Of a stretch of DNA of 64,000 nt, positions 8,951 to 40,720 are shown in pieces. Made by a program: the position numbers and the translations under genes. The notes beneath the pieces are model-generated. The model had not been told where the DNA came from, did not search any database, and was given only the letters and a program-made list of their open reading frames with translations. Within the stretch, counting starts at the first letter, position 1. Every line of letters starts with the position of its first letter. Source of the stretch: Asterias rubens (lineage: Eukaryota); NCBI RefSeq assembly GCF_902459465.1, contig NC_047072.1, positions 11,966,001 through 12,030,000 on the forward strand. Direction: 5' to 3'.

Positions 8951-11900
8951 GACAGGGATAGTATCCATTAAAATAGTATACTCAATCCTAGACGTCTAGG
9001 AGCCAGACATTCATGGTGCTTTAAATCCTCAGAGCCGATGTGGTATAGTGAAAAATGCTGAAAAGAGGGGTGTGACATGGCTTGACAGACATCCCAAAAT
9101 ATGGATCTTTAAAAGAATCATGGATACAGAAAACAATATTTCTGGATGATACGGATAACAAATCTGAATCTTATTCAGTTGTGTCGTATCTCCCACCATA
9201 ATTCTTCACAACTTTTAAAAGGAAAATATTCATCACTAAGTTGGATACCTTTAAAAAAAGGTTGAGTATAAAACAAAATCTGTGCCTGTAGCTAGAATGT
9301 CAAGTTGACATCCAACAACGTACCGCACCAGTAAACATTTGCATACACCGCCATGTGTAAAATACTGACACCAAAAGAGGCGGGGGGGGGGGGGGGGGGG
9401 CCTTCGCCCATTGACCACCCCCCCCCCCTAAAAAAAAACATGATTGGAGAAAGGGAATTGTGGCTCTAAATAACAAGTACTAATTTTCTCAAAGTCCAAT
9501 GACATGACATGGATGGGAAGGACATGTGTGTGAAATTCCTTGATAGCCTAGAATGGACCGTTCCACTTAATCTAAGAGGTTTTGGTCATGTCTCATAATT
9601 AAGATTGGTGTTTTTTTGTTTACAGGGTTATGTAATGAAGTCACTTAGATGTAAACATATCGCGATCGACATACGCACAGCAGCTAGACGTCTTCCTCCC
9701 TCATCGACGAGGGAGGAAGACGCATGGCATAATTGTACATGTGGGAGTGTTTTTAGAAAACACTTCTATCCTATCCTTGCTGCATGATTTTAGCGTTAAA
9801 AATTGATTTGTTATAAAATGTTACAAATATTCCACTCAGGGATTTTAGGGGTGAATTAAAAATAGTTAATATGATACAACCATTATTAACGTTCGAAAAG
9901 TAGGGGTGCTATAGCATATTCCAGCACCCCTTCGTTTTGGGTAGGGGTGCTCATTTGCAACACCAACAGCACCTCCGCTCTCGCGGGCCTGAACATTGTT
10001 GGAATTAATATCACAATGTATTTATTGTTTTAACCCTACTACCACCCGTTCCCCCCCCCCCCCCCCCAATCATGTTGCGCACCGTCTTCCAGGTAAAAGA
10101 AATTCTCGGGTATCGGACCATGGAGCAATATAATATTGCTCCATGGTCTGCCCTGACTCCCCTTGTGGTCCCCTGCTGAATTGAAACGCAAAACAATTGA
10201 ATAGATGGATATTGCCCCCCCCCCCCCCCCCCTCACCACCACCACCCCACCACCACCACCACCACACCCCGGGCAAAATAATGACTCCACCGGGGATCGG
10301 ATCCAGCCGGTGGGGTTGGATATTCCCATTAAAGGCAGGGGAATCACCATCGTTCTTCTATATAGAATGCTAACATAGCTACATAACTTGAACATGAGGT
10401 GATCTATCTAATTTCATCATCACCTGCAAAAGCAATCTCTTCAACTCACTCCCTTGAAATACCATAGACGCGAGCAGCAGTCTCAACTGGGCGCAGCTGC
10501 TACGCAAGTGAGATGGGGATGGGTTGGCAATAACATAGTTATTAGTCCGGGAAATATTGAGTGCAAAAGGTTCGAGTTGTGGGATGTGCAGGGCCCCCGT
10601 GGGGAACCTTAAAATGTGAATTCTTAAGCGCAGTGAGTGGTGCGTTGGGAGGGGGGAGCCCCCTAAACTCACCCCAAAAGTCCATTTAAATGAAATGTTG
10701 AGTGCAAGCAAAATTTCTTCATATATTGAAATGCCATGGTCCACTGACTATGAATTCCGTACTTAAGAAAATAAATAATGGTGCTAAGTGTACTTAAGAA
10801 GGCCCTTAATTAGTGCTAATTAGACGTTTAAATGAAATTTTGAGTGCAACAATGAAACATGTGTCAAAGTGTACCTTAGACTGTGCTGACTCAAAACCTA
10901 TATGGTCTACTATCCGTGTGACACTCAGCGGCCACAATAATTGTGTTTTCTGGTTTTCTCTCCACGTGTTTCTGGAGTGTGAGTTTTGGAAGGTTAAACC
11001 ATCTCTATTATAACGGCTCAAAGAGTTTATGTTCCAAAAAATGATGCAGACAAGTTTCTTGTGCGTAATTCGTTGTCGTTATTTTTTTAAGCGGCTTGTT
11101 GTTGTACTTGCTCAGGCAGATGCTCAGCTCTGTGATTAGTTTGGATTAGATTAGATAAGATTATATAGGACTCACTTAAAAAAAAAAAAGTTCTGTTGCT
11201 GTTATTTTATGATACTAATACAAAAGAAAATGCGTTGGGTCTAATAATATTATATTAAATATTAATAGACTATTAATAATAGAAGTACATAACAATTATC
11301 AAGAAATTAGTAAAAGAATGTGAAATGACACCCAAAGTACTCATTAATGATAACTGTAAAAATATCATAATAATGATAACATTACAAGATTTCAAAGGGG
11401 ATCTTCAAGAAAAACTGACAGATTTTGTATAGTATTCAAAATGAGCCGGCAAAAGCCATTATCAGTTCAACAACAAGAGCATCTTTAAATTCAATTTGTC
11501 CCCAGAAATGGGGAAAAAACTTAACGGGTCATTCTTCAAAGAATGACAGGAAGAAAAAAAACACACGTGAAAGAATGTAAGGGCCTCTGAAGTTACGTGC
11601 ATGCGCTTCGGGTGTTTTTCTAGTCGCAGGTAGCCACAAGCAGCCAAGGGGCCCCAGAGCCTGTGACTGTAAGCCTTTAAGTTTGCTAAGCACAGAAAAA
11701 AATTGCGCAGCAGAAACTGATACCAGCCAAAGTTCCTTAAAGTTGACATTGTTGCAGTTGGTGCCCCAGTCATATTTTGCTTATCATCTTAAAAATTGCT
11801 AAGAAGCTTTAGGATGTTGTGCAGGCGAGTGGGCGTGGCGCGTGGCTGCAAAAGAGCGCCCTCTTCGGGCTGCAGCTGAGGAATCCGGACAAAGTGCGCT

Positions 11901-27713: not shown

Positions 27714-30700
27714 TTAGACAATGTCATCACGGATGTAGGTGGCAAACGTTAGATCATAACATTGAAACTCGGAGAACTGGCGATCGTGACGTCGGTAGGT
27801 ATCCATGAAGACTTCACGCAGTGCCTTTCGGCTGGTACCGCATTTGGCTGTCTGGAACCAAAAGAACATTGACAGTTATTTGAGAAAAAAAAGAAGTGTT
27901 ACGTTAACGGTTACAGACTCAAAAGATGTTGGTTTGTCTCACTACTAACCCATGGAGCTCATATGAGATTTACAATTTATTGCCTTGTAAACAAGTAGGC
28001 TGATCTTGTTATCTTTGGAATATTTGGGGACATAACTGCAGTCTTTTTTAAAGACAGTGGACACTATTGGTAATTGTCAAAGACAAGTCTTCTCACTTGG
28101 TGCATCTCAACATATGCATAAAATTACAAACCTGTGAAAATTTGAGCTCAATCGGTCGTCGAAGTTGCGAGATAATAATGAAAAAAAAAAAACACCCTTG
28201 TCACACGAAGTTGTGTGCTTTCAGATGCTTGAATTCGAGACCTCAAATTCTAAATCTGAGGTCTCGAAATCAAATTCGTGGAAAATTACTTCTTTCTCAA
28301 AAAGTACGTCACTTCAGAGGGAGCCGATTCTCTCAATGATTTTTTACTATCAACCTCTCCCCATTACTCGTTACCAAGTAAGGTTTTATGATAAACATTA
28401 TTTTGAGTAATTACCACTAGTGTCCACTGCCTTTAAATAATATTCAAATTATTAAGTCTTTACAAACCTTGCTTGCAAACAGGGTCATGACAACTTTCCC
28501 TGGATTGAACACCGTCAGAACTTTCTTCACAAACTCGCTGTAGTCCTTCTGCACAAATAAACATATGTTTTTACACTCGGTTAAATATTGATTAAAGGTA
28601 TAATAAGGATTGGTAAGGATACAAAAAAGAATTGTTTAAAGGGTCTATGTACTTTTTGTAGGACAAAAAACACAATGTCCACAGATTTACATTAAACTTA
28701 CACAGTTTTAAGATAATGATAGTAGAAAACTTCCCTGAAAATATTATTTGCTGAGGTGCTGTAGTTTTTGAGAAACGAGTAAAACAATGTCAACAATGTT
28801 TGTCTGTCAATAGGTTAGGGCACAAAAGCATTTTGCTTAACCTTACACCTAAATGTTGTCTTTAAATTACTACTTGTTAATTTTTTTGAAGTATTGTGTA
28901 CCTAATCATACCTCATACTATATTGCTTGTTTTAATTTTGACATAAATGTACGCTATTGTATTATTGTTTTGTATGACAGCATTGAAATAAATGTACTGA
29001 ATAATAAAAAAAAAAAAAAATAATAATTTTCCTCTCATTGATCATGAGACAAAAATTATTTTAGCATGTAAAAACGTATTTTCATAACATTTTTTTACTT
29101 ATTTCTCAAAAACTACAGCACCTCAGCAACTAATATTTTAAGGTATGCTTTCTACTATCATTATCTTCAAACGGTGTAAGTTTAATGTAAATCTGTGGAC
29201 ATTGTGTTTTGTGTTACAAAAAGTACCCAAATCCGTTAATTCTAGTCAGAAAACTTACTGATTATAAAGTTCAATTGGAGGAAAACTGTCTGAAAACCTA
29301 ACAAAATCAGCTAATTTTGAACCCAAATCAATGACGATGTGTTTGCATGCTGAAAACTGTGCGTAGATTTTCACTATTTGCTCCTGTCTCAACACTGATT
29401 ACGCCCAATTAATTTAATTGTCACCGGTTTGCTATTTCATGTGTATGGTTGATCACACAAAACATGAACGCTGTCTGTGACTACATGTATTTTATATGCT
29501 CTGCAAATCCTGTACATTAACAGATATGTATCTTTTTTAGTTCATGTCAAAAAAAAAGAGAAGGAAATAGCAACTGAAAATCAACTGTGACCGAGTTGTG
29601 AGTTTCCTGTGGCTCTATTATTAAAGGCACTGGACACGTTTGGTAATTGTCAAAGACCAGTATTCTCACTTGGTGTATCCCAACATATGCATCAAATAAC
29701 AAGCCTGTGAAAATTTGGACTCAATTGGTCATTGAAGTTGCAAGAAAATGATGAAAGAATAAACACCCTTGTTGTTGTACAAAATAGTGTGCTTTCAGAT
29801 AGGAATAAAAGACTTTTGGCCAGAAGTCTTTTATTAGGAATAAAAGACTTCTGGCCAGAAGTCTTTTACTATTTTAGTGAGAAATTACTTCTTTCTCAAA
29901 AACTAGGTCACTTCAGAGGGAATTGTTTCTTACAATGTTGTATACTATCAACAGCTCTCTGTTGCTCGTTGCCAAGTTATGCTAGATCAATAAATATTTT
30001 GAGTAATAACCAAACCTGAACAGTGCCTTTAAAGAGGACGGTAAGTTTAAAGAGGACGGGAAATGACCCAATTCAATTTTGCGATGTACTCATTTTCCAG
30101 TGGAAAGCAGGAAAGTGGCACGGCAAAAATATTCAAGAGGTTTATATTTCCATAATTTCAAACTGTTTGGCAAGTATTTTTGGGAATGACCATCATCATC
30201 TTACTTACCATTTCAATGTTAGTTTCAAAGCTGACGTAGGAATATTTTTCTTCTGGAGTAATGTGAATGGTCACATATCCATCCTGTTAAAAAAAAGAAC
30301 ACATTTGAAGGAGAAAAAAACCTCTTTATGACTGCATAAATAACGTAGAATTTTTAGTGTTTCAATGAAAGAACAAATACCAAATGTATTGTTCTCATTT
30401 ATTCTCATTTAAAGGAATTGGTGAGAACAAAACTCGTGAAGATCCCAGATTTACATAAAACTTACACGGTGTAATGATGATGATAGTAGAAAACATCCCT
30501 TTAAAAAATTTCTGTCTGAAATTTCATATTTGATGAGAAATAAATTATCTAATTTCCTGTTTAGAGTTTATCGCTCAGGGAGCGTTTTATTCATTTTTGT
30601 TTGGCATGGAAGCAATGCAAAATGTGTTATCGGTTTTTCACTGTTCTCTCGTGACCCAGATGGCCGATCGATCTCAAACTTCTACAGGTTTGTCAGTTTA

Positions 30701-33700
30701 TGTATATGGTGGATTACATAAAGTGCTTACACTGCCAGCAACTTTTTTGCTAGCAAAACCAATTCTGTAATGTTCCTTTAAGTCCTACAGCTTTCTCCTA
30801 AAGAGGAGTAGAGTATTACTGTTCAAACCAAACCGTCTCTTTTCAGAGCCAGCACTCCCTCAAAAGAGAATTATTACATGGTTGTACCCGCAAGTTTACT
30901 ATAATTTATAGATTATTCTGAACTCCTACATATCCCTCAACGACCGAACGAATTAAGCCAGGGTTAAAACAATAAAGTAAAATTAACTAGCTAGCTTAAA
31001 ATTAAAATGTGTGGACGTGTTACAAGGCCTACGTTACTGTGGACCCCTTTTGTTCTCGGGTCCACGCTGTGTTAAGTTAAAAACAAACCTGGCCCACAGA
31101 AGGACATAGTATTAGAAACACAATACCCCTTTTATGGCTTCGCCAATCGCGGGGACTCGCAATAAATTAAGGGCAGAGTTACTATAATTATACAATATCA
31201 ATTTCATTTATAAAATTTACATAGTTACCGTTTAAAATTCACATTATTAAAATGTATTTCAGACACAGAGCAATACGACAAATACTGGCGATAATAATGC
31301 GTCAGCCAATATAACATAAACTTGTAATCAATGTAAAATCAATGTTAAATCAATGCACAACCATTGAGCGTTGCATGCCATTTGACCCCTTACAGAAAAG
31401 GAGCCTTGAGGACATACCAAACAGGAATTGAAATTTAATAAAAACGGAAAATTTAATAGATGGAAAGTTAGCATTGGGGATATTAATTGTGGTTTTGCCA
31501 ATAACAGTGTTTTTAGCACTGTATACTCGGTACTAAATACTTTAGAATGGCAAAGGTCGTGGGTTCGAATCCTACCCGAGTAACGTGCCTGGGATTTTTT
31601 TTTAACAGAGCTCTGGAAAGTACTGAGTATACAGTGCTAACACACATTTCGGTGTATATGGGTAAACAGAAAAGTTAAGACAGATTTCCCTACATAATTT
31701 TGCTTTTTTAACAAATAGGGTATTCATGAATAGGAATAATCCAGTAGAAACAAACAGCTGCTGATTCTTTGCTTACGGTAAGCAGAGCCATGAAAGTAGG
31801 AGGGGTCAACTAATTATTTTCTTACCTTGGGCAACAAACCATTCATGGAATAGCCGCATGGTTCAAAAAGAAATTCATCAATCTGACAATCCGGTAACAG
31901 ATCTGCTATTCCAGACTCCTGAGAAAAAGATGACAAACGAAAGTTAATACTCAAGTTAATTAATAATAATAAATAATAAACAATATTTATTTAGAGCCAA
32001 ATTATGCCTAAAGCACTCCCAAGGTGCTTTACAGATATACAGTTGTTAAATAAAAGCCAATAAACATGTCGATAAATTTAAAACAACTGCAAACAGGGTA
32101 AACAAAAACACTTCACTTTCACTTCTAAAAATAAGTCCAAACAATGGGAGATCAAAGAGAAGTCTTCCATTTCCCGGGTCGATAAACATTTGTGTTCCAG
32201 ACCGAAGCTCGTGAAAACCCAGTGAGATACATGTAAACAAGTTTTTGTAAGAGCAATTTCGAGTGTGCACCATGGTTAACTAACGGTTGATTATTTTGAC
32301 TTGAACCCAGGCTGGTCGACTACTGGTCAGTTTGTTGGCTAGTCTGGTTGACCATTTTGGAACCAGCCGCAGTACATTGGTTTCAGACGATGGTTTCTTC
32401 TGTGGTCCCGATAGCCTGTTCCATGTAAACATGTGTAAAGGGCAGAGGGGAACCAGTGACACTACAAGGGAGCCAGTGACACTATAGCGTAATGCGGAAG
32501 GCAATGGAGTGTTGAATACCATGGTCAGATGGTACCGATGGTTAAAGACACTGCACACTATTGGTAATTGTCAAAGACCAGTCTTCTCACTTGGTGTATC
32601 TCAACATTTTGCATAAAATAACAAACCTGTGAAAATTTGAGCTTGATTGGTAACGAGTAATGGGGAGAGGTTGATAGTATAAAACATTGTGAGAAACGAG
32701 ATAATAATGAAAGAAAATACACCCTTGTCACACGAAGTTGTGTGGTTTCAGATGCTTCATTTTGAGACCTCAAATTCTAATTCTGAGGTCTCGGAATCAA
32801 ATTCGTGGAGAATTACTTTTCTCGAAAACCTTGTTACTTCAGAGGGAGCCGTTTCTCACAATGTTTTATACTATCAACCTCTCCCCATTACTCGTTACCA
32901 AGTAAGGTTTAATGCTTATAATTATTTTGAGTATTTACCAATAGTGTCCACTGCCTTTAACTAGGCTCACAAACTAGTTGTTTGAGTATGTCACTGCGCA
33001 TGTACGTTGCTGGTCAGTGGTCAAACATGGGTTGAATAAATGTTCGCATTTAATAGACGTTAAATTTGCATCAAGAATAAAGAAAATGAATTTTTGGTTT
33101 TTACCCATATACACCGATGTATGTTAGCACTGTATACTAAGTGCTTACCCGAATTCTGTAAGAACAAAAAATCACAGGCATATTACTCAGGTTGGATTCG
33201 AACCCACGACCTTTGCAATTCTAGAGCTGTGTCATACCAACTACATTGTAGACCACCAAGATTGTCCAGTGGCTAGAGGCAGTTTGAATCCTATGTTTTA
33301 GCAGCGGGTACTGCAAACGATTTAATAGATATTAAATTTGCATCGGGGATCAGACATCATTGTACATGGGTAAAAACCAAAACTGAATATAAATGTTTGC
33401 ACTCGAAATTTCTCTAGGATCCGATAAATACAGAATACAAACCTTAGTGACATCTTTGCCATTACGGCCGGTGGTGTTTTCAAAGTGCTTCATGACCTTG
33501 GGGTCAAGGTTGGTCATCAAGATGTGCAAATACGAGGTCAAGGGTCATAGAATAAGTGTTTATGTTACAAATTTTTTTAAAATACAATAAAATATAATGA
33601 ATGCAAATAAATTTAAAATTCTCCCAAACAAGATGCTACTACTGTATAATCTTTGGGCAAATTGACCTAAAAATTTCAGATTAAATTTAAAATAGATATT

Positions 33701-36700
33701 TTTGTTTAGCTTTAAGAAAGTTTAAGCTTTTACTTTAGGGTTTTGTACGAAAGAAAAGTGGTAGTTGAAAATTAATTATTGTCAGGATGACAACATTTCT
33801 TAATACATACAGCTTTACTAACATGTAAATATAAAAATTAACTAAAAATTAATCAATGTTATTTCTACATTAATTAACAATCGCTGTGTCAATGGTGAAT
33901 AAAAAAGTGATTGAGGTTGTTGAATACAAGATCTAAAGTTGTATCATTTGATGTCTTTGTATAAAAAAAAATTGCACCAATGATGGTGGCTGTGCACAAT
34001 GCAAAAATGCTTCTTTGTTTTTCAGTTTTGACACAGCGTCATCTGTCAACATTTGTTGTTTAAGCAAACAAAATAATAAAAATTTCTTTTGGGGAAAACC
34101 GGACCATGCAACTTTTTACAGAAATGATTAAAAGCAACTTTAAAAAATTATAAAGCATAAATTTAATCGTCAGTTTCAAAGGATATTTCAAGCGTTTGAT
34201 CAGGTTGGTTCTGGTTGGTGTTATCCAGTGTGTACAGATACCTGAAAAAAAAACACAAGAAATAGTTAGACAGTTTAGTTATACTTATTTGGAGTGATAT
34301 GGAATTTTAAATTCTTAGTTGACTCTGAAGTCTTAAAGAAGAAAAAAACAATTAAATTAAAAGCACCAACTTGTTTAAAACATTATAAAAGATGAAAGAG
34401 TGGCCAAAAAGAAAAATTGTATCTGTAAATTAATTCAGATGTCAGAAACTTTTTTTTTTACCATGTGATGAAAGGGTTTGGTGGGTAATGGACCGGAACA
34501 ATTACCCAACAGCACCCAAAGAAATTTCTGTGAAGCCCTGGTGCCCTTTGCAACGTTCCAAAATAAATTTCCATATGCCTCATCGAAGTGCCCCTCATTT
34601 GAGGGAAAATTGCCCCGCCCCTTCAAGTGTGAAGTTCCAAGGCCGGTATTGCATACTGCGAAACCTATTAATATTATGTGTGTTATTTTCAATTTAATGG
34701 AGTGCACAATGACGGACAGACCGATTTCCGACGATCTCAGTAAATGTTGGCAAGCAAAATTGTTTGGATGGATTCAGAAGATAAACGTACCAGCAATCTC
34801 CGTTGATTCGTCCCAACATGTAGGCTGCTCCATCTGCCAATTAATACAAAATCATTCCAGTCATCAGCAAATATTCACACGTAAACAAGGTTTTGGGAAA
34901 ACGAAACTTAAAGGGTCTGTTAGCGTTTGGCAATCACTCTTAAAATTATTGGCAATAAAAACTTAATTGACAAAAAGTACAGCGGCTTTTGATCGTATTA
35001 AGCATTTTTTGAGAAGCATTTCACTTTGAATTAATGTATTTATCAGGGATGAGATTCTGAAAAAAAAGGGAAAACACTGAAATCTTTTTGTTGTTGCGGG
35101 AGGTGAAGAACACACGTAAACTATATTTCCCTTAAACAAAATCTTCAGTCGCTGGCTGGATGAGTTAAAACCAAATTTTGTTACATTAAATATCCAACTT
35201 ACTGTCAAACAGAGTATCCAGGTATTGGACCTCACTGGCAAAGCTCTGATGAGGAACCTGCTGGAGCTCAGGGCGGAAGAAATTCTTTCGGGAGTAAAAC
35301 AAATCCTACAAAAAAATAATTGTTAAAAATGTTGGTTGTCTGTTGGCATTTTGTACACAGCAGTAGAATAATAAATAAATAATAATAATAAGACTTGTAA
35401 TGCGCCCATATCCACCCTGCTGGGTGTTCAAGGTGCAGAAGTAACAATAAGAGAGGAACTGGTCGCTAGGTGGCAGCAGACACCACGCCTGATGCTTCAC
35501 GAAAGCATCTGAGGCTATTGCCTCCATGCCCTTTGTGATAACCTCGGTGCCCTTTGTGTTAATTGTCTTAATGCCCCCGGATATAGACTCCTTGCCCCTG
35601 GTTATTGTCTTGGTACCTAAGCTTGGGCAATATCACGATATTATTGAATATCGCGATAACAATTTGGAAACGATTTCGATATCGGATCGATTTGGTTTTA
35701 ATCGAAATATCAATATATCGCGATATATCGCGATATATCGAAATATATTGTGAAATCGATTGCGAAATCGATTAAATATCGCAATATCACAATGTATTTC
35801 CTAGCTGAGACATCTTGCACCCCATAGGTTTGGAGTAAAACCAGAACAATATGTCATTAGAACACCTCTCTTATGCTATGACTGTCTCTTCTACAACTTT
35901 CACTTGGAGTTTGAAGACTGATGATGTCAAATTTAATTAATTGCGATTATATCGAATATCGCGATATATTGTCGGCGATATATCGTGAATAAAATAAATT
36001 GATATCGCCCAAGCTTATTGGTACCCCCTGGTCGTTGCCTCTATGCCCCATGTCATTGCATCCAAGCCCCTTGTCATTGCCGCTGTTGCCCCTAGTCTTT
36101 GCCTCCAGTCCAACAAGGATGTTCACAGGATGATTTTTAAAAAAAACAGGCATGCAACTGTAACTTCACCAAAAAAAGAGGAAATTACAAAACTTCAATG
36201 ATTTTGTAAAGTATTTTCGAATTTTGAATGGTAAAACTGAGATTAATAAAACAGGAAATCAGCTGATCAGAGAAAAAGTTGCATGTCTGGGGATATCTAC
36301 ACTGACTGACTGGTATAAAGGCAAAAACAAATTTAATGGCCAGACAATTCGACCTGAGCGGAGTCTTTCTCAAAGACTAAAAAGAGAAAAACTTTTAGCA
36401 GTCAAGAACGACTCTGCTAGGGTTGAAACATCAGACAATTAACTAATTTTTTGCTTTTCATTTTTACCTTAACAACAAAGTCACAGAACTCCTTGGCTAG
36501 TTTCATGATGGGCTCTATGGCATTCAGGAGAGTGGTCGTCCCACACGTCTTGAGAATAAAGCGCTTTGTTGACAGAAACATGCTACTCTCACTGAAATAT
36601 TGACAAGGGTTTTAAAAGGTTTTGAGTTTGAATCCAACCTAAGTATGCCTATGATTTTTTTCACAGAGCTCTGGAAAGTAATGAGTATTACAGTGCTCAC

Positions 36701-39700
36701 ACAAATAGCATCGGGATAAAACCAAAATTAATATTCTCAATCCTTGATGTTCAAAATGTCCACAGATTTACATTAAACTTACAGGGTTTGAAGATAATAA
36801 TAGTGGGAAGCTTCCCTTCAAATATTACTAACTGAGGTTGTGTAGTTTTTGAGAAATGAGTAAAACAAGTCACAAAATAGTTTTGGTCTCATGAGACCAA
36901 AATTATTTTAGCATGTAAAATCCCCTTAACCAGTTATGATATTATACCAAACTATAGCATAACTGGTTAATACATTTTTACATGCTGAAACTGAGACGAA
37001 AATTATTACTTTTACTCATTTCTCAAAAACTACAGCACCTCAGTAAGTAAAATTTCAAGGGAAGCTTTCTACTATCATAATTTTCAAGCTGTGTAAGTTT
37101 AATGTAAATTTGTGGACATTGTGTTTTTTGTTAGGAAAAAGTACATATACCCTTTAAAGACAGTGGACACTATTGGTAACTGTCAAAGACCAGTCTTCTC
37201 ACTTGGTGTATCTCAACATATGCATGAAATAACAAACCTGTGAAAATTTGAGCTCAATTGGTCGTCGAAGTTGCGAGATAATAATGAAAGAAAAAACACC
37301 CTTGTCACACAAAGTTGTGTGCATTTAGATGGTTAATTTCGAGACCTCAAGTTCTAAACTTGAGGTCTCGAAATCAAATTCGTGGAAAATTACTTCTTTC
37401 TCGAAAACTACTCCACTTCAGAGGGAGCCGTTTCTCACAATGTTTTATACTACCAACCTCTCCCCATTTCTCGTTACCAAGTAAAGTTTCGTGCTAATAA
37501 TTATTTTGAGTAATTACAAATAGTGTCCACTGCCTTTCAGAAGCTATGATCTTATACTTTTTACTTATTAAAACAATTATTTTTAATTTTAAATTTGCAT
37601 TGCTTACACCATGGATACAGAACATCATTTATGTTTTACCCAGACACTGATGTGTGTTCAGCACTGTACATAAAATAAAAATAAAACATAGGATTCAAAC
37701 TGCCTCTTGCCACTTGGCAAGCTCAGTGGTCCAGTGATAAGGCATCTTATAATTTCTAAAGCCCGGTTCATACTTCCTGCCAGCGAATGCGAAACAAATG
37801 TTGACGTCACAAATTCGCAACGAAAAGTTTGCAGCAGTTGCCCTCCGTTCAACTCACTCGCGAATATCGCTGCGAAAGGAGGGTTGTGACGTCAAATTCA
37901 CGTCAAAATTGCTTCGCATTCGCATTCACAGGAAGTATGAACCGGGTTTAAGGCTAAAAAAATGGGACGAAAATGAACTGCGAATTGTACAAAATTGATG
38001 ACCTATGACATATATGTAGGCCATTAGGGTGGATCTGCTTGGGTGCTATAATTGTGGCACTTTCTTGACTATAAGCCTGGACAATGCTGAAAGGTAAAGT
38101 ACTTTGTAGTAAAGGGTGGTACCAGTGTATTGTGAGTGGTTACAGTGGCTTCATCAGCGCTAAGCAAAATTACCTGAGGACGTAAGCGTGGAGATCATCT
38201 CGACACTTCTCACTCACTATCTCACAATGAACCAAACCAAGCAGTTCAACGAGGCGTTCCCTGGAGATCAAAATAAAACATTATATTGATAATGACATAT
38301 TATGTAAAGCGCATAATGCAAAAGCCTCTAAGCGCATAAAGAGAACAATAAAATATACATCGAGTGAAAGATACAATAAAAAATAGGCAGATTACAAATA
38401 AGCAGCTTCAAACAAATGAGTTTTTAACAGAGACATACACAAACAGTGTAATGAACTACATGTAGCCTCTTGAATATGCACAGAGAGACTGAAAAACAGA
38501 CATTTGAAAATTGATAATATACACAGAATTCAAAAAAAAAATTAACAGCAACGTCTTGTGAAGGTTCTAAACTTATTTATCACAACACTTAAACCACCCT
38601 TCAAGGGGCAGTATGTAAGAGTATGATCATCAATTTCTTAAAGGGCCAAGTACCTGGACTCGAGTAACTTACATGTAGGTCAGGTGTCTCATTTGAAATT
38701 ACTGGAAGTAACCATTTAGAGTGGCCTTAAATGGAGCTTGCATATATAACTGATTTCCAAAGCTTCTCACAGACTTTACACTTGATGTGTACTTAAAGAC
38801 AGTGGACACTATTGACAATTGTCAAAGACTAGCCTTCACAGTTGGTGTATCTCAACATATGCATAAAATAACTAACCTGTGAAAATTTGAGCTCAATCTG
38901 TCATCGAAGTTGCGAGATAATTATGAAAGAAAAAACACCCTTGTCACACAAAGTTGTGTGCGTTCAGATGGTTGATTTCGAGACCTCAAGTTCTAAATCT
39001 GAGGTCTCGAAATCAAATTCGTGGAAAATTACTTCTTTCTCGAAAACTATGGCACTTCAGAGGGAGCCGTTTCTAACAATGTTTTATACCATCAACCTCT
39101 CCCTATTACTCGTCACCAGGAAAGGTTTTATGCTAATAATTATTTTGAGTAATTTCAAATAGTGTCCACTGCCTTTAAGAAAGCCAAGATTTCTGTGTTT
39201 GACATACTTGCGGTTTTCATTTTTACACAAGACCAGTTCTAGAGTATTTCTGCCAAGAATGGCACACTTCAATACGCAAGGAGCAAAATAATTTTTTAGA
39301 ACGAGCCCTTCATACTATTTTAGGCTATGGATGTGTATTATCTATTCACTATGGCGTGGCGTGTCGTGGCCGAGCGGTTAACAGCACTGGATTCAAGCTC
39401 TGGTGTTTGATCAGCAGGGTGTGGGTTTGAATCCCTGTCGTGACACTTGCTATGTAAAATTGGGGAGGTAGTGCTTTCTGCTCTACCGGCCAGGCTTCGG
39501 ACTGATAGTACCCAAGCCTACATCCGTATGGACTGTAAAAGGGGTAACCCTGTTTTAGCCCTAGGAGTAGGTGGCAAAGGCCTCTGGAATAAAATCATTG
39601 TAGCCCACACCTTGAAGTGGCCTTCCGGCCTTGTTTGTCTGGCGACTTGCATAAAAAATAATATAAAAAAAAACTATTTAAAAAAATATGCTCTTACTAG

Positions 39701-39949
39701 TCTCAATATTCCCACTTTAGAATCTTGACGTCATCCGTTAATCAAGTTTGGTAATAGTCTTTGGTTCATCACTTACTACCTCCGGAGAGAAGTAAATTAA
39801 ACTAACCTGGGAATGGCTTTCAGGTCGTGGGTAACCTTATCGGGGATGTCACTCTTGCCCGAGGGCTCAAACCAAATTTCAAGAAGTTTCTCCGTACCCT
39901 CGTAGTGTGTCAGCTCACTCCCCGTGTCACGCATCCCAGAAAGGTCCAT
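27714..39949 (-). CDS. AMD1: S-adenosylmethionine decarboxylase proenzyme (340 aa). Exons 39949-39807, 38260-38174, 36591-36468, 35305-35203, 34833-34791, 34241-34187, 33523-33443, 31918-31826, 30283-30209, 28548-28468, 27851-27714
   Basis: Exon lengths sum to 1023 nt in one open frame. Motifs [21 protein letters not shown] (pyruvoyl self-cleavage site, E78/S79), [47 protein letters not shown]. Confidence 0.96.
28052..28432 (+). mobile_element. Kolobok-type MITE, family A
   Basis: TTAA flanks; near-identical to other family A copies; in AMD1 last intron. Confidence 0.85.
28640..29235. mobile_element. Kolobok-type MITE, family G, with an inserted poly(A)-tailed fragment (about 28800-29025)
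   Basis: TTAA|AGGGTCTATGTACTTTTTGTAGGACAAAAAACACAATGTCCACAGATTTACATTAAACTTACA and its inverted copy at the far end. Confidence 0.75.
29625..30028 (+). mobile_element. Kolobok-type MITE, family A variant
   Basis: TTAA flanks; same termini, different internal palindrome block. Confidence 0.75.
31965..32540 (-). mobile_element. Probable L2/SINE 3' fragment in an AMD1 intron
   Basis: Minus strand ends with GTAAAGCACCTTGGGAG..GCTCTAAATAAAT..(TTA)n, an L2-type tail; body unassigned. Confidence 0.45.
32546..32956 (+). mobile_element. Kolobok-type MITE, family A
   Basis: TTAA flanks; internal segment 32645-32690 resembles the family core in the opposite orientation. Confidence 0.8.
33059..33349 (-). 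repeat. Interspersed repeat with internal tRNA-like core and TTAAATTTGCATC direct repeats
   Basis: B box GGTTCGAATCC and oligo-T on minus. Other copies near 31490-31670, 36615-36735, 37585-37735, 46788-46900, 55090-55280 and 60955-61080. Confidence 0.7.
33524..34186 (-). other. AMD1: U12-type (minor spliceosome) AT-AC intron in AMD1, 663 nt, phase 0
   Basis: 5' site ATATCCTTT at 34186-34178, branch-like CCTTGAC at 33543-33537, 3' end TTTGCAC. Splicing joins PDQTLE to ILMTNLDP; unspliced read-through stops 8 codons into the intron. Confidence 0.93.
35618..36017. mobile_element. hAT-like MITE with 8-bp TSD TTGGTACC
   Basis: TIR TAAGCTTGGGC(A/G)ATATC; subterminal CGATAT repeats; TSD at 35610-35617 and 36018-36025. 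Confidence 0.85.
36760..37153. mobile_element. Kolobok-type MITE, family G
   Basis: Right end ...AAAAGTACATATACCCT|TTAA, with the TTAA shared by the adjacent family A copy. Confidence 0.7.
37158..37535 (+). mobile_element. Kolobok-type MITE, family A
   Basis: Starts at the TTAA shared with the preceding element; right TSD reads TTCA. Confidence 0.85.
37760..37947. mobile_element. PIF/Harbinger-like MITE, family H
   Basis: TIR AGCCCGGTTCATACTTCCTG / CAGGAAGTATGAACCGGGT; TAA and TTA flanks. Partial copy near 51855-51916. Confidence 0.75.
38797..39174 (+). mobile_element. Kolobok-type MITE, family A
   Basis: TTAA flanks and family TIR. Confidence 0.85.
39359..39675 (+). mobile_element. tRNA-derived SINE with LINE-homologous 3' tail and poly(A)
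   Basis: A box TGGCCGAGCGG, B-box-like GGTTTGAATCC, central block GGACTGTAAAAGGGGTAACCCTG, tail TGTAGCCC..GACTTGCATAAAAA. Headless reverse copy at 51256-51482; diverged copy at 63720-64000. Confidence 0.8.
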
Positions 39950-39957
39950 CTTGGCAT
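39910..39957 (-). other. Overlapping upstream ORF of AMD1, [15 protein letters not shown]
   Basis: ATG 8 nt upstream of the main ATG, out of frame, stop TGA at 39912-39910 inside the AMD1 CDS. The ORF is seen in the sequence; its translation is not demonstrated. Confidence 0.6.
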
Positions 39958-40234
39958 GACAGGGGGCGCTCTCTCCACAGGGTGTTTAGGCAACGCCGTG
40001 ATGAAAATTCTGTCTGAGAGAACGAGGTCAAACTGTTTTTTAAATAATTGCATTTTTTTCTCTAAAGGTGTAAAGGATTGGTAGAGTTGACAAAAATAAT
40101 CAAAGTTATCCTGTTTTTGGGGATCAACCATACATGAAATAACAAACTTGTAACAGTTTTGAAATAATCTGCTGTGAGAGTCGAGGCACTGTAAAGATGG
40201 AACATCAAGTTAGAAGTGGTACAATTCTGTTACA

Positions 40235-40613
40235 AGACAGTGTACACTATTGGTAATTGTCAAAGACCAGTCTTCTCACTTGGTGTATCTCAACATATGC
40301 ATAAAATAACAAACCTGTGAAAATTTGAGCTCGATCGGTCGTCGGAGTTGCGAGATAACTATGAAAGAAAAAAACACCCGTCTCACACGAAACTGTGTGC
40401 ATTTAGATGCTTGATTTCGAGACCTCAAGTTCTAAACTTGAGGTCTCAAAATCAAATTTGTGGAAAATTACTTCTTTCTCCAAAACTACATCACTTCAGA
40501 GGGAGCCGTTTCTCATAATGTTTTATACTATCAACCTCTCCCCATTACTCGTTATCAAGTAAGGTTTGATGACAATAATTATTTTGAGTAATTACCAATA
40601 GTGTCCACTGCCT
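40235..40613 (+). mobile_element. Kolobok-type MITE, family A
   Basis: Family TIRs; right TTAA intact. Confidence 0.85.
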
Positions 40614-40720
40614 TTAAGGGCATGTACCAGTGCTTCGCTTCGTTTTTGAATCAGCAAGGGCACCTTAGTAAAGGGTAAGGGTTGAATTTACATTTTACAG
40701 AAAGAAATGGTTCTATTTAA

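Follow-up and report, generated by a model that had tools for sequence, protein, structure and literature searches.

Animal U12-type AT-AC introns, such as those of STK11, SPCS2 and PROX1 (PMC6717393), begin with ATATCCTTT and carry a TCCTTRAC-type branch sequence near the 3′ end. Each is a lone minor intron among major ones in a housekeeping gene, with conservation across phyla. The published lists of minor-intron genes for human and mouse include SMS, STK11 and RNPC3. Mammalian SMS (spermine synthase) offers a further point of comparison for the gene described here, as it also encodes a polyamine-pathway enzyme and has a U12-type intron. In addition, Asterias rubens was treated as a minor-intron-bearing species in a genome-wide survey (PMC10639083). 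No literature linking AMD1 to U12 splicing was found.

In the 64,000-nucleotide window of A. rubens DNA that was analysed (the whole stretch), intron 6 of AMD1 shares the features listed above for the STK11, SPCS2 and PROX1 introns. It differs from them in lying in phase 0, a minority phase (average 22%, PMC10639083), and in having a host that is absent from the human and mouse lists and is not a minor-intron gene in either species. SMS differs in being a separate gene, its U12 5′ site is of the GT type (GTATCCTTT), and no evidence was found that the SMS and AMD1 minor introns are related or co-regulated. Intron 6 is very probably a canonical U12-type AT-AC intron that is ancient, efficiently spliced and deleted on the turtle lineage. 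It is real yet ordinary and involves no new mechanism; the presence of the intron in the RefSeq gene model and the inclusion of A. rubens in the published survey are already known. The relevant features are as follows.

27714..39949, minus strand: coding region of AMD1 (S-adenosylmethionine decarboxylase proenzyme), 11 CDS exons, complete ORF
39949-39807, 38260-38174, 36591-36468 and 35305-35203, minus strand: CDS exons 1-4 of the spliced model
34833-34791, 34241-34187, 33523-33443 and 31918-31826, minus strand: CDS exons 5-8 of the spliced model
30283-30209, 28548-28468 and 27851-27714, minus strand: CDS exons 9-11 of the spliced model
34187..34241, minus strand: exon 6, 55 nt, encoding ...PDQTLE, with a normal acceptor (...TTTTCAG)
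33524..34186, minus strand: intron 6, U12-type AT-AC, 663 nt, phase 0, assigned from motifs, RNA depth and orthologues
34178..34186, minus strand: U12 5′ splice site ATATCCTTT, the first nine intron bases
33537..33544, minus strand: branch-point sequence CCCTTGAC, 7 of 8 matches to TCCTTRAC
33524..33525, minus strand: 3′ terminal AC; the last four bases are GCAC at 33527-33524
33443..33523, minus strand: exon 7, 81 nt, 27 residues (ILMTNL...), followed by a GTTTGT donor

The spliced model translates into 340 amino acids and aligned with the human AdoMetDC proenzyme 1MSV over residues 15-336 (E = 7e-99). The product contains the autoprocessing motif YVLSE|SSMF (as YVLSESSMF) and has PF01536 on record, and its homology to eukaryotic AdoMetDC proenzymes is full-length, which places it in that family. 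Moreover, the model is identical to the A. rubens RefSeq protein XP_033635862.1 (P0428), indicating that the public annotation already uses the AT-AC junction. The Asterias amurensis protein XP_071800689.1 showed 99.4% identity, with the same residues over the junction. Among the ten introns of AMD1, intron 6 is the only one that is not GT-AG.

The junction separates the E185 codon from that of I186 (human E178|I179). The 5′ site fits the U12 AT-AC consensus /ATATCCTT. At the other end, CCCTTGAC supplies a TCCTTRAC-like branch within the usual ~10-20 nt of the 3′ splice site, with CCTTGAC at 33543-33537 and the branch A at 33538, 14 nt from the intron end. The intron closes with the terminal AC of the AT-AC subtype in the context ...TTTGCAC|ATC. 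These observations bore out the preliminary description, which had proposed an AT-AC U12-type intron of 663 nt with a GCAC end and a CCTTGAC branch that splits PDQTLE|ILM; the motifs are backed by the RNA coverage, by identity to the annotated protein and by conservation among orthologues. The window contains three copies of the ATATCCTTT 9-mer, where 0.87 would be expected, and a count of three was reached in 7 of 100 shuffles. The 9-mer alone is thus not improbable, and its significance comes from its placement at the only in-frame junction, together with the branch distance and the orthologue conservation. Cuts moved by 1 or 2 nt (TA-CA, AT-AT) would give the same mRNA, and AT-AC was chosen over them on the basis of the consensus and the orthologues. 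No Rfam match was found within intron 6, and the further [AG]TATCCTT sites in the window (13777, 22914 and 45871 on the plus strand; 28622, 18769 and 8204 on the minus strand) have no coding context for U12 introns.

From these signals, the U11 snRNP would be expected to recognise ATATCCTTT at the 5′ end, and CCCTTGAC, located 14 nt before the terminal AC, would be the pairing site of the U12 snRNP. Excision by the minor spliceosome, as the sequence signals predict, would then join the E185 and I186 codons. AT-AC introns of the U2 type exist, and the major spliceosome might accordingly remove an intron with AT-AC ends such as this one. However, the 5′ site carries the full U12 consensus, all six species compared have a TCCTTRAC-like branch 9-14 nt upstream of the 3′ end, and these signals are conserved over phyla, so that U2-dependent removal is considered very improbable.

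Removal of intron 6 from the mRNA at its exact boundaries, within the 2-nt ambiguity of the cut, was evaluated using RNA data. In raw RNA-seq reads (X14), exon 6 was covered at ~30x and exon 7 at ~20x, while the five intron 6 bins averaged ~0.12x and the depth over 33560-34179 was ~0.1x. Two Logan contigs with two Asterias species labels (X3 record 1, 1202 nt; X5 record 7, 1216 nt) cover ~54 nt of exon 6, and their exon 7 piece (33442-33521) adjoins the exon 8 piece. In both, exactly 100 nt separate the exon 4 piece from the exon 7 piece, the sum of 43 + 55 nt and the 2 AT bases of ambiguous placement; with intron 6 retained, the distance would grow by 663 nt, and skipping of exon 6 would leave 43 + 2 = 45 nt. 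Support for the 34187→33523 junction thus consists of depth, contig arithmetic and annotation identity rather than split reads. No Logan transcript contig encoding exactly the A. rubens AMD1 protein was found, and an exact 30-mer across the spliced junction had no match among metagenome contigs, a result that is uninformative.

The same data bear on the possibility that cryptic GT-AG sites or exon skipping are mainly used and that the AT-AC model reflects nothing more than a forced ORF. A GenBank model of Mya arenaria does place a GT-AG pair around the homologous AT-AC intron. However, this model drops 20 conserved residues, among them those corresponding to human D174 and E178; the RefSeq Mya protein retains all 20. 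In A. rubens, GT is missing from the vicinity of the donor and AG from that of the acceptor, so there is no in-frame GT-AG alternative. Furthermore, the depth over each of the two exons matches that of the gene, and the length of the contigs agrees with the AT-AC junction alone. The use of other sites, which the preliminary description had named as grounds for rejecting its model, is therefore largely refuted and was given even less credence than U2-dependent removal. The suspicion that automated annotation would mis-model the gene did not hold for A. rubens, where the RefSeq protein is identical, and proved justified elsewhere, in the Mya GenBank model. In view of this annotation error, the AMD1 intron provides a practical test case for gene predictors.

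The age of the intron was assessed by mapping orthologous introns. A U12 intron at the same position and phase was present in Patiria miniata (160 nt), Amphiura filiformis (1270 nt), M. arenaria (328 nt), Owenia fusiformis (336 nt) and Limulus polyphemus (1952 nt, with AT-AA ends), that is, in five other named species over four phyla, and in host contigs from metagenomes. Among the non-canonical endings of minor introns, AT-AA is reportedly the most frequent (PMC10639083). The 5′ site ATATC(C/T)TTT is common to the six orthologues, and the branch sequence in the orthologues is TCCTTGAC, TTCTTAAC or TCCTAAAC, 9-14 nt before the intron end. The introns range from 160 to 1952 nt and show no conservation of length or internal sequence. 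The annotated Mya and Owenia proteins are compatible with no cut other than AT-AC. A recent gain in the starfish or echinoderm lineage has nothing in its favour beyond the absence of the intron from the vertebrate gene. It is refuted by the bivalve, annelid and horseshoe crab orthologues, which share the codon boundary and the U12 signals, and it retains next to no probability, the least of any reading considered. Across the named AMD1 loci sampled (echinoderms, a bivalve, an annelid, a horseshoe crab and one turtle), the comparison shows that the common ancestor shared by the echinoderm, mollusc, annelid and chelicerate lineages already had the intron, which therefore dates back at least to the bilaterian ancestor. 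AMD1 thus joins the genes that had a minor intron in early bilaterians.

In metagenomes, 41 more AMD1 host contigs showed PDQTxE followed by ATATCYTT, and 29 of them also had a branch motif, an A-C end and a downstream [ILV][ILV][ML] exon, although one of these 29 calls (L044) looks spurious and several others are truncated contigs. One group of unplaced taxon (L018, L022, L025, L028, L029, L034, L036 and L037) showed ~50-55% identity to any named bilaterian AMD1 and might be non-bilaterian. An ESM Atlas search with a 39-aa exon from this group returned meaningless bacterial matches.

The preliminary description had left a choice between loss in vertebrates and gain in the starfish, and had given human AMD1 a single 145-nt exon here, with neighbours of 87, 103, 43 and 93 nt. 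This arrangement was seen in the one vertebrate locus compared, the turtle Emydura macquarii (P0155, locus L009), in which a single 145-nt exon lacks the U12 intron; the mapping settled the choice for loss on the turtle lineage. The turtle CDS exons measure 131, 87, 127, 103, 43, 145, 93, 156 and 138 nt, and those of the starfish model 87, 124, 103 and 43 nt upstream of the U12 intron and 93 nt after the interrupted segment. Exons of 87, 103, 43 and 93 nt are therefore identical in the two genes, and the pairs 124/127 and 138/138 correspond. All eight turtle intron positions match starfish introns in position and phase (8 of 10). The two genes differ in the 145-nt exon, which corresponds to 55 + 81 nt around the U12 intron in the starfish, and in the 156-nt exon, which is unsplit in the turtle and divided into 75 + 81 nt by a further starfish intron. 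In this sequence comparison, an old bilaterian intron was lost on the turtle lineage, merging two exons into one of 145 nt; the deletion is judged clean, and its date within the chordates is inferred. AMD1 thus illustrates clearly how a minor intron was removed with precision on the vertebrate lineage: the other intron positions stayed in place and the two exons fused in frame.

Slow splicing occurs for some U12 introns. An invertebrate regulatory device could be envisaged in which slow or conditional minor splicing, intron retention and a stop after seven codons tune AMD1 and polyamines. Read-through into intron 6 gives ISFETDD and then TAA, the eighth codon, and would truncate the protein right after the equivalent of human E178. 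Moreover, the U12 type has been maintained in at least four phyla, and SMS, another polyamine gene, carries a minor intron in human and mouse. On the other hand, in the one informative library (X14), intron 6 reached ~0.12x against 20-30x for the flanking exons, or ~0.5% of exon coverage, and the U2 intron 5 next to it stood at ~0.3x. The RT-PCR-type libraries X15-X17 had no coverage of AMD1. The proposed splicing-level control is thus unsupported, since retention of intron 6 does not exceed that of the adjacent U2 intron, and splicing is efficient and constitutive in the sampled RNA. Furthermore, the turtle gene does without the intron, its length and internal sequence vary among species, and neutral models also predict long-term keeping of the intron type (PMC10639083). 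A regulatory role is accordingly regarded as unlikely, and slightly more so the version in which a pre-bilaterian intron was kept as an invertebrate retention brake on polyamine synthesis and replaced in vertebrates.

As a separate observation on expression in this region, an abundant and highly expressed repeat lies at 32444-33063.

A complete S-adenosylmethionine decarboxylase (AMD1) gene was found on the minus strand of the window, and its model was rebuilt using six-frame translation and splice signals.

Coding exons of the rebuilt AMD1 model (window positions)
39949-39807, minus strand, exon 1
38260-38174, minus strand, exon 2
36591-36468, minus strand, exon 3
35305-35203, minus strand, exon 4
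34833-34791, minus strand, exon 5 (43 nt)
34241-34187, minus strand, exon 6 (55 nt)
33523-33443, minus strand, exon 7
31918-31826, minus strand, exon 8
30283-30209, minus strand, exon 9
28548-28468, minus strand, exon 10
27851-27714, minus strand, exon 11

The 11 joined exons gave a 340-aa open reading frame (ORF) whose product matched human AdoMetDC proenzyme (PDB 1MSV) with E = 7e-99, the alignment covering residues 15-336, and retained the YVLSE/SSMF processing site. The model was identical at all residues to RefSeq XP_033635862.1/XP_033635863.1 of Asterias rubens, indicating that the public annotation of this species already uses the AT-AC junction, and the start and stop of the gene recorded in the assembly coincided with those of the model. 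In addition, the Asterias amurensis protein was 99.4% identical. An out-of-frame ATG lies 8 nt 5' of the AMD1 start and opens a 15-codon ORF (39910-39957, minus strand) that overlaps the main start codon.

Nine of the ten introns are GT-AG. The tenth, intron 6 (34186-33524, minus strand, 663 nt), begins with ATATCCTTT and ends with GCAC, and its branch motif CCCTTGAC at 33544-33537 places the A 14 nt from the last intron base. The intron is in phase 0 at the E185/I186 boundary, equivalent to human E178/I179 in the 1MSV alignment. GT was absent near the donor and AG near the acceptor, leaving no GT-AG alternative that keeps the frame; without splicing, the ORF gains ISFETDD and then TAA. The 5' 9-mer is not rare by itself (3 in the window vs. 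0.87 expected), and its significance is its location.

RNA evidence was drawn from a random-primed raw RNA-seq library (X14) and from transcript contig sets of two Asterias species labels (X3 and X5). In X14, depth summed to 13.3 in the exon 6 bin (~30x per exon base) and to 13.2 in the exon 7 bin (~20x), and the five intron 6 bins (33560-34179) showed 0, 0, 0.26, 0.35, and 0 (~0.12x). The three full bins of the neighbouring U2 intron 5 showed 0, 0.78, and 0.14. Moreover, in X3 record 1 (1202 nt) and X5 record 7 (1216 nt), the exon 4 and exon 7 pieces were spaced by exactly 100 nt and the exon 7 piece adjoined the exon 8 piece. This spacing equals exon 5 (43 nt), exon 6 (55 nt), and the AT common to the starts of intron 6 and exon 7, and the word-depth bins were consistent with it (exon 5, ~46 nt; exon 6, 54 nt; exon 7, 80 nt). 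A different length would be expected from retention, from exon 6 skipping, or from another junction. The junction of 34187 to 33523 is supported indirectly, by depth and contig spacing; cuts moved by 1 or 2 nt yield identical mRNA, so that the AT-AC boundary is ambiguous from mRNA.

For the orthologues, an exact spliced mapper was used to thread each annotated protein through its genomic locus. All five tabulated species have a phase-0 U12-type intron between the corresponding codons (PDQT[LV]E/[ILV][LI]M).

Introns orthologous to intron 6 (branch distance from the 3' end)
Patiria miniata (starfish), 160 nt, 5' ATATCCTTTT, branch CCCTTGAC, 14 nt
Amphiura filiformis (brittle star), 1270 nt, 5' ATATCCTTTT, branch TTCTTAAC, 13 nt
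Mya arenaria (bivalve), 328 nt, 5' ATATCCTTTC, branch TCCTTGAC, 11 nt
Owenia fusiformis (annelid), 336 nt, 5' ATATCTTTTC, branch TCCTTGAC, 9 nt
Limulus polyphemus (horseshoe crab), 1952 nt, AT-AA, 5' ATATCCTTTT, branch TCCTAAAC, 9 nt

AT-AC was the sole protein-compatible cut in Mya and Owenia, and AT-AA, as in Limulus, is reported to be the commonest non-canonical minor-intron ending (PMC10639083). Furthermore, a degenerate metagenome search (PDQTxE codons, then ATATCYTT) matched 43 contigs, 41 of which were host-genome AMD1 fragments with the same arrangement; the AMD1 contigs form several sequence groups, one mite-like and one Dreissena-like. Motifs, RNA depth, contig spacing, RefSeq identity, and orthologues together bear out the AT-AC U12 intron proposed in the preliminary description, and mapping its position across animal AMD1 genes showed it to be shared by echinoderms, bivalve, annelid, and horseshoe crab. 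Eight of the host contigs (L018, L022, L025, L028, L029, L034, L036, and L037) encode an AMD1 that has the same U12 intron, GYSANGLL in place of GYSMNGLL, fused exons 5 and 6, and ~50-55% identity at most to named bilaterian AMD1; this group may be non-bilaterian.

The coding exons of the turtle Emydura macquarii AMD1 measure 131, 87, 127, 103, 43, 145, 93, 156, and 138 nt, matching the human sizes given in the preliminary description (a single 145-nt exon, with 87, 103, 43, and 93). Every turtle intron position and phase has a starfish match, whereas the 145-nt exon spanning PDQTLEILM is split in starfish by intron 6, and the 156-nt exon by an additional phase-0 intron at M268/K269 (30209-30283 / 28468-28548, minus strand), a position also occupied in Mya and Limulus. 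AMD1 and AMD2 are absent from the human/mouse minor-intron gene lists in the PMC6717393 supplements, which include STK11, RNPC3, and SMS. The presence of the intron in all tabulated orthologues and its absence from turtle point to ancestral presence and later deletion: judged from these gene structures, the common ancestor of the bilaterian phyla sampled already had intron 6, and the intron was precisely deleted on the lineage to at least the turtle. Of the two histories initially offered, loss in vertebrates therefore holds for the turtle lineage, and gain in starfish was rejected because bivalve, annelid, and horseshoe crab carry the same U12 intron.

Ordinary constitutive minor splicing is the best-supported reading of intron 6, in which U11 would recognise the 5' site, U12 would engage the branch site, and the intron would then be removed efficiently. 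The suggestion that it acts as a rate-limiting or conditionally retained control on polyamine synthesis found no support in these data: retention was ~0.5% of exon depth, no higher than for the U2 intron, the interior and length of the orthologous introns are unconserved, and vertebrates manage without it. As the data come from one steady-state library, we leave conditional retention a small chance.

The concern that automated annotation would mis-model the gene was unfounded for A. rubens and valid for some pipelines. In Mya arenaria GenBank WAR06980.1 (P0002), a forced GT-AG intron (9731-10118 of the AMD1 locus, L004) encloses the true AT-AC intron (9764-10091) and removes 20 conserved residues (VGVSQPDQTVE LLMWDLCPK); exon 4 is also missing from that model. 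A literature search returned no paper tying AMD1 or S-adenosylmethionine decarboxylase to U12 or AT-AC splicing, and A. rubens is among the species of a pan-eukaryotic minor-intron survey (PMC10639083). Intron 6 is individually undescribed, though of a well-known kind and already in the RefSeq model.

An interspersed repeat of a few hundred nt was also observed, with 5-6 copies lying within or near AMD1 introns.

Copies of the interspersed family (window positions)
28027-28436, 29600-29987, 32697-32960, 37133-37539, 38772-39178, 40210-40617

RNA-seq depth reached thousands over the copy at ~32444-33063, indicating a very high abundance of the family, either among transcripts or in the genome itself. 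Within AMD1 intron 8, a weak tRNA match (31524-31583, plus strand) scored 29.6 bits, just above the gathering score of 29, and probably represents a pseudogene or a repeat derived from a tRNA.
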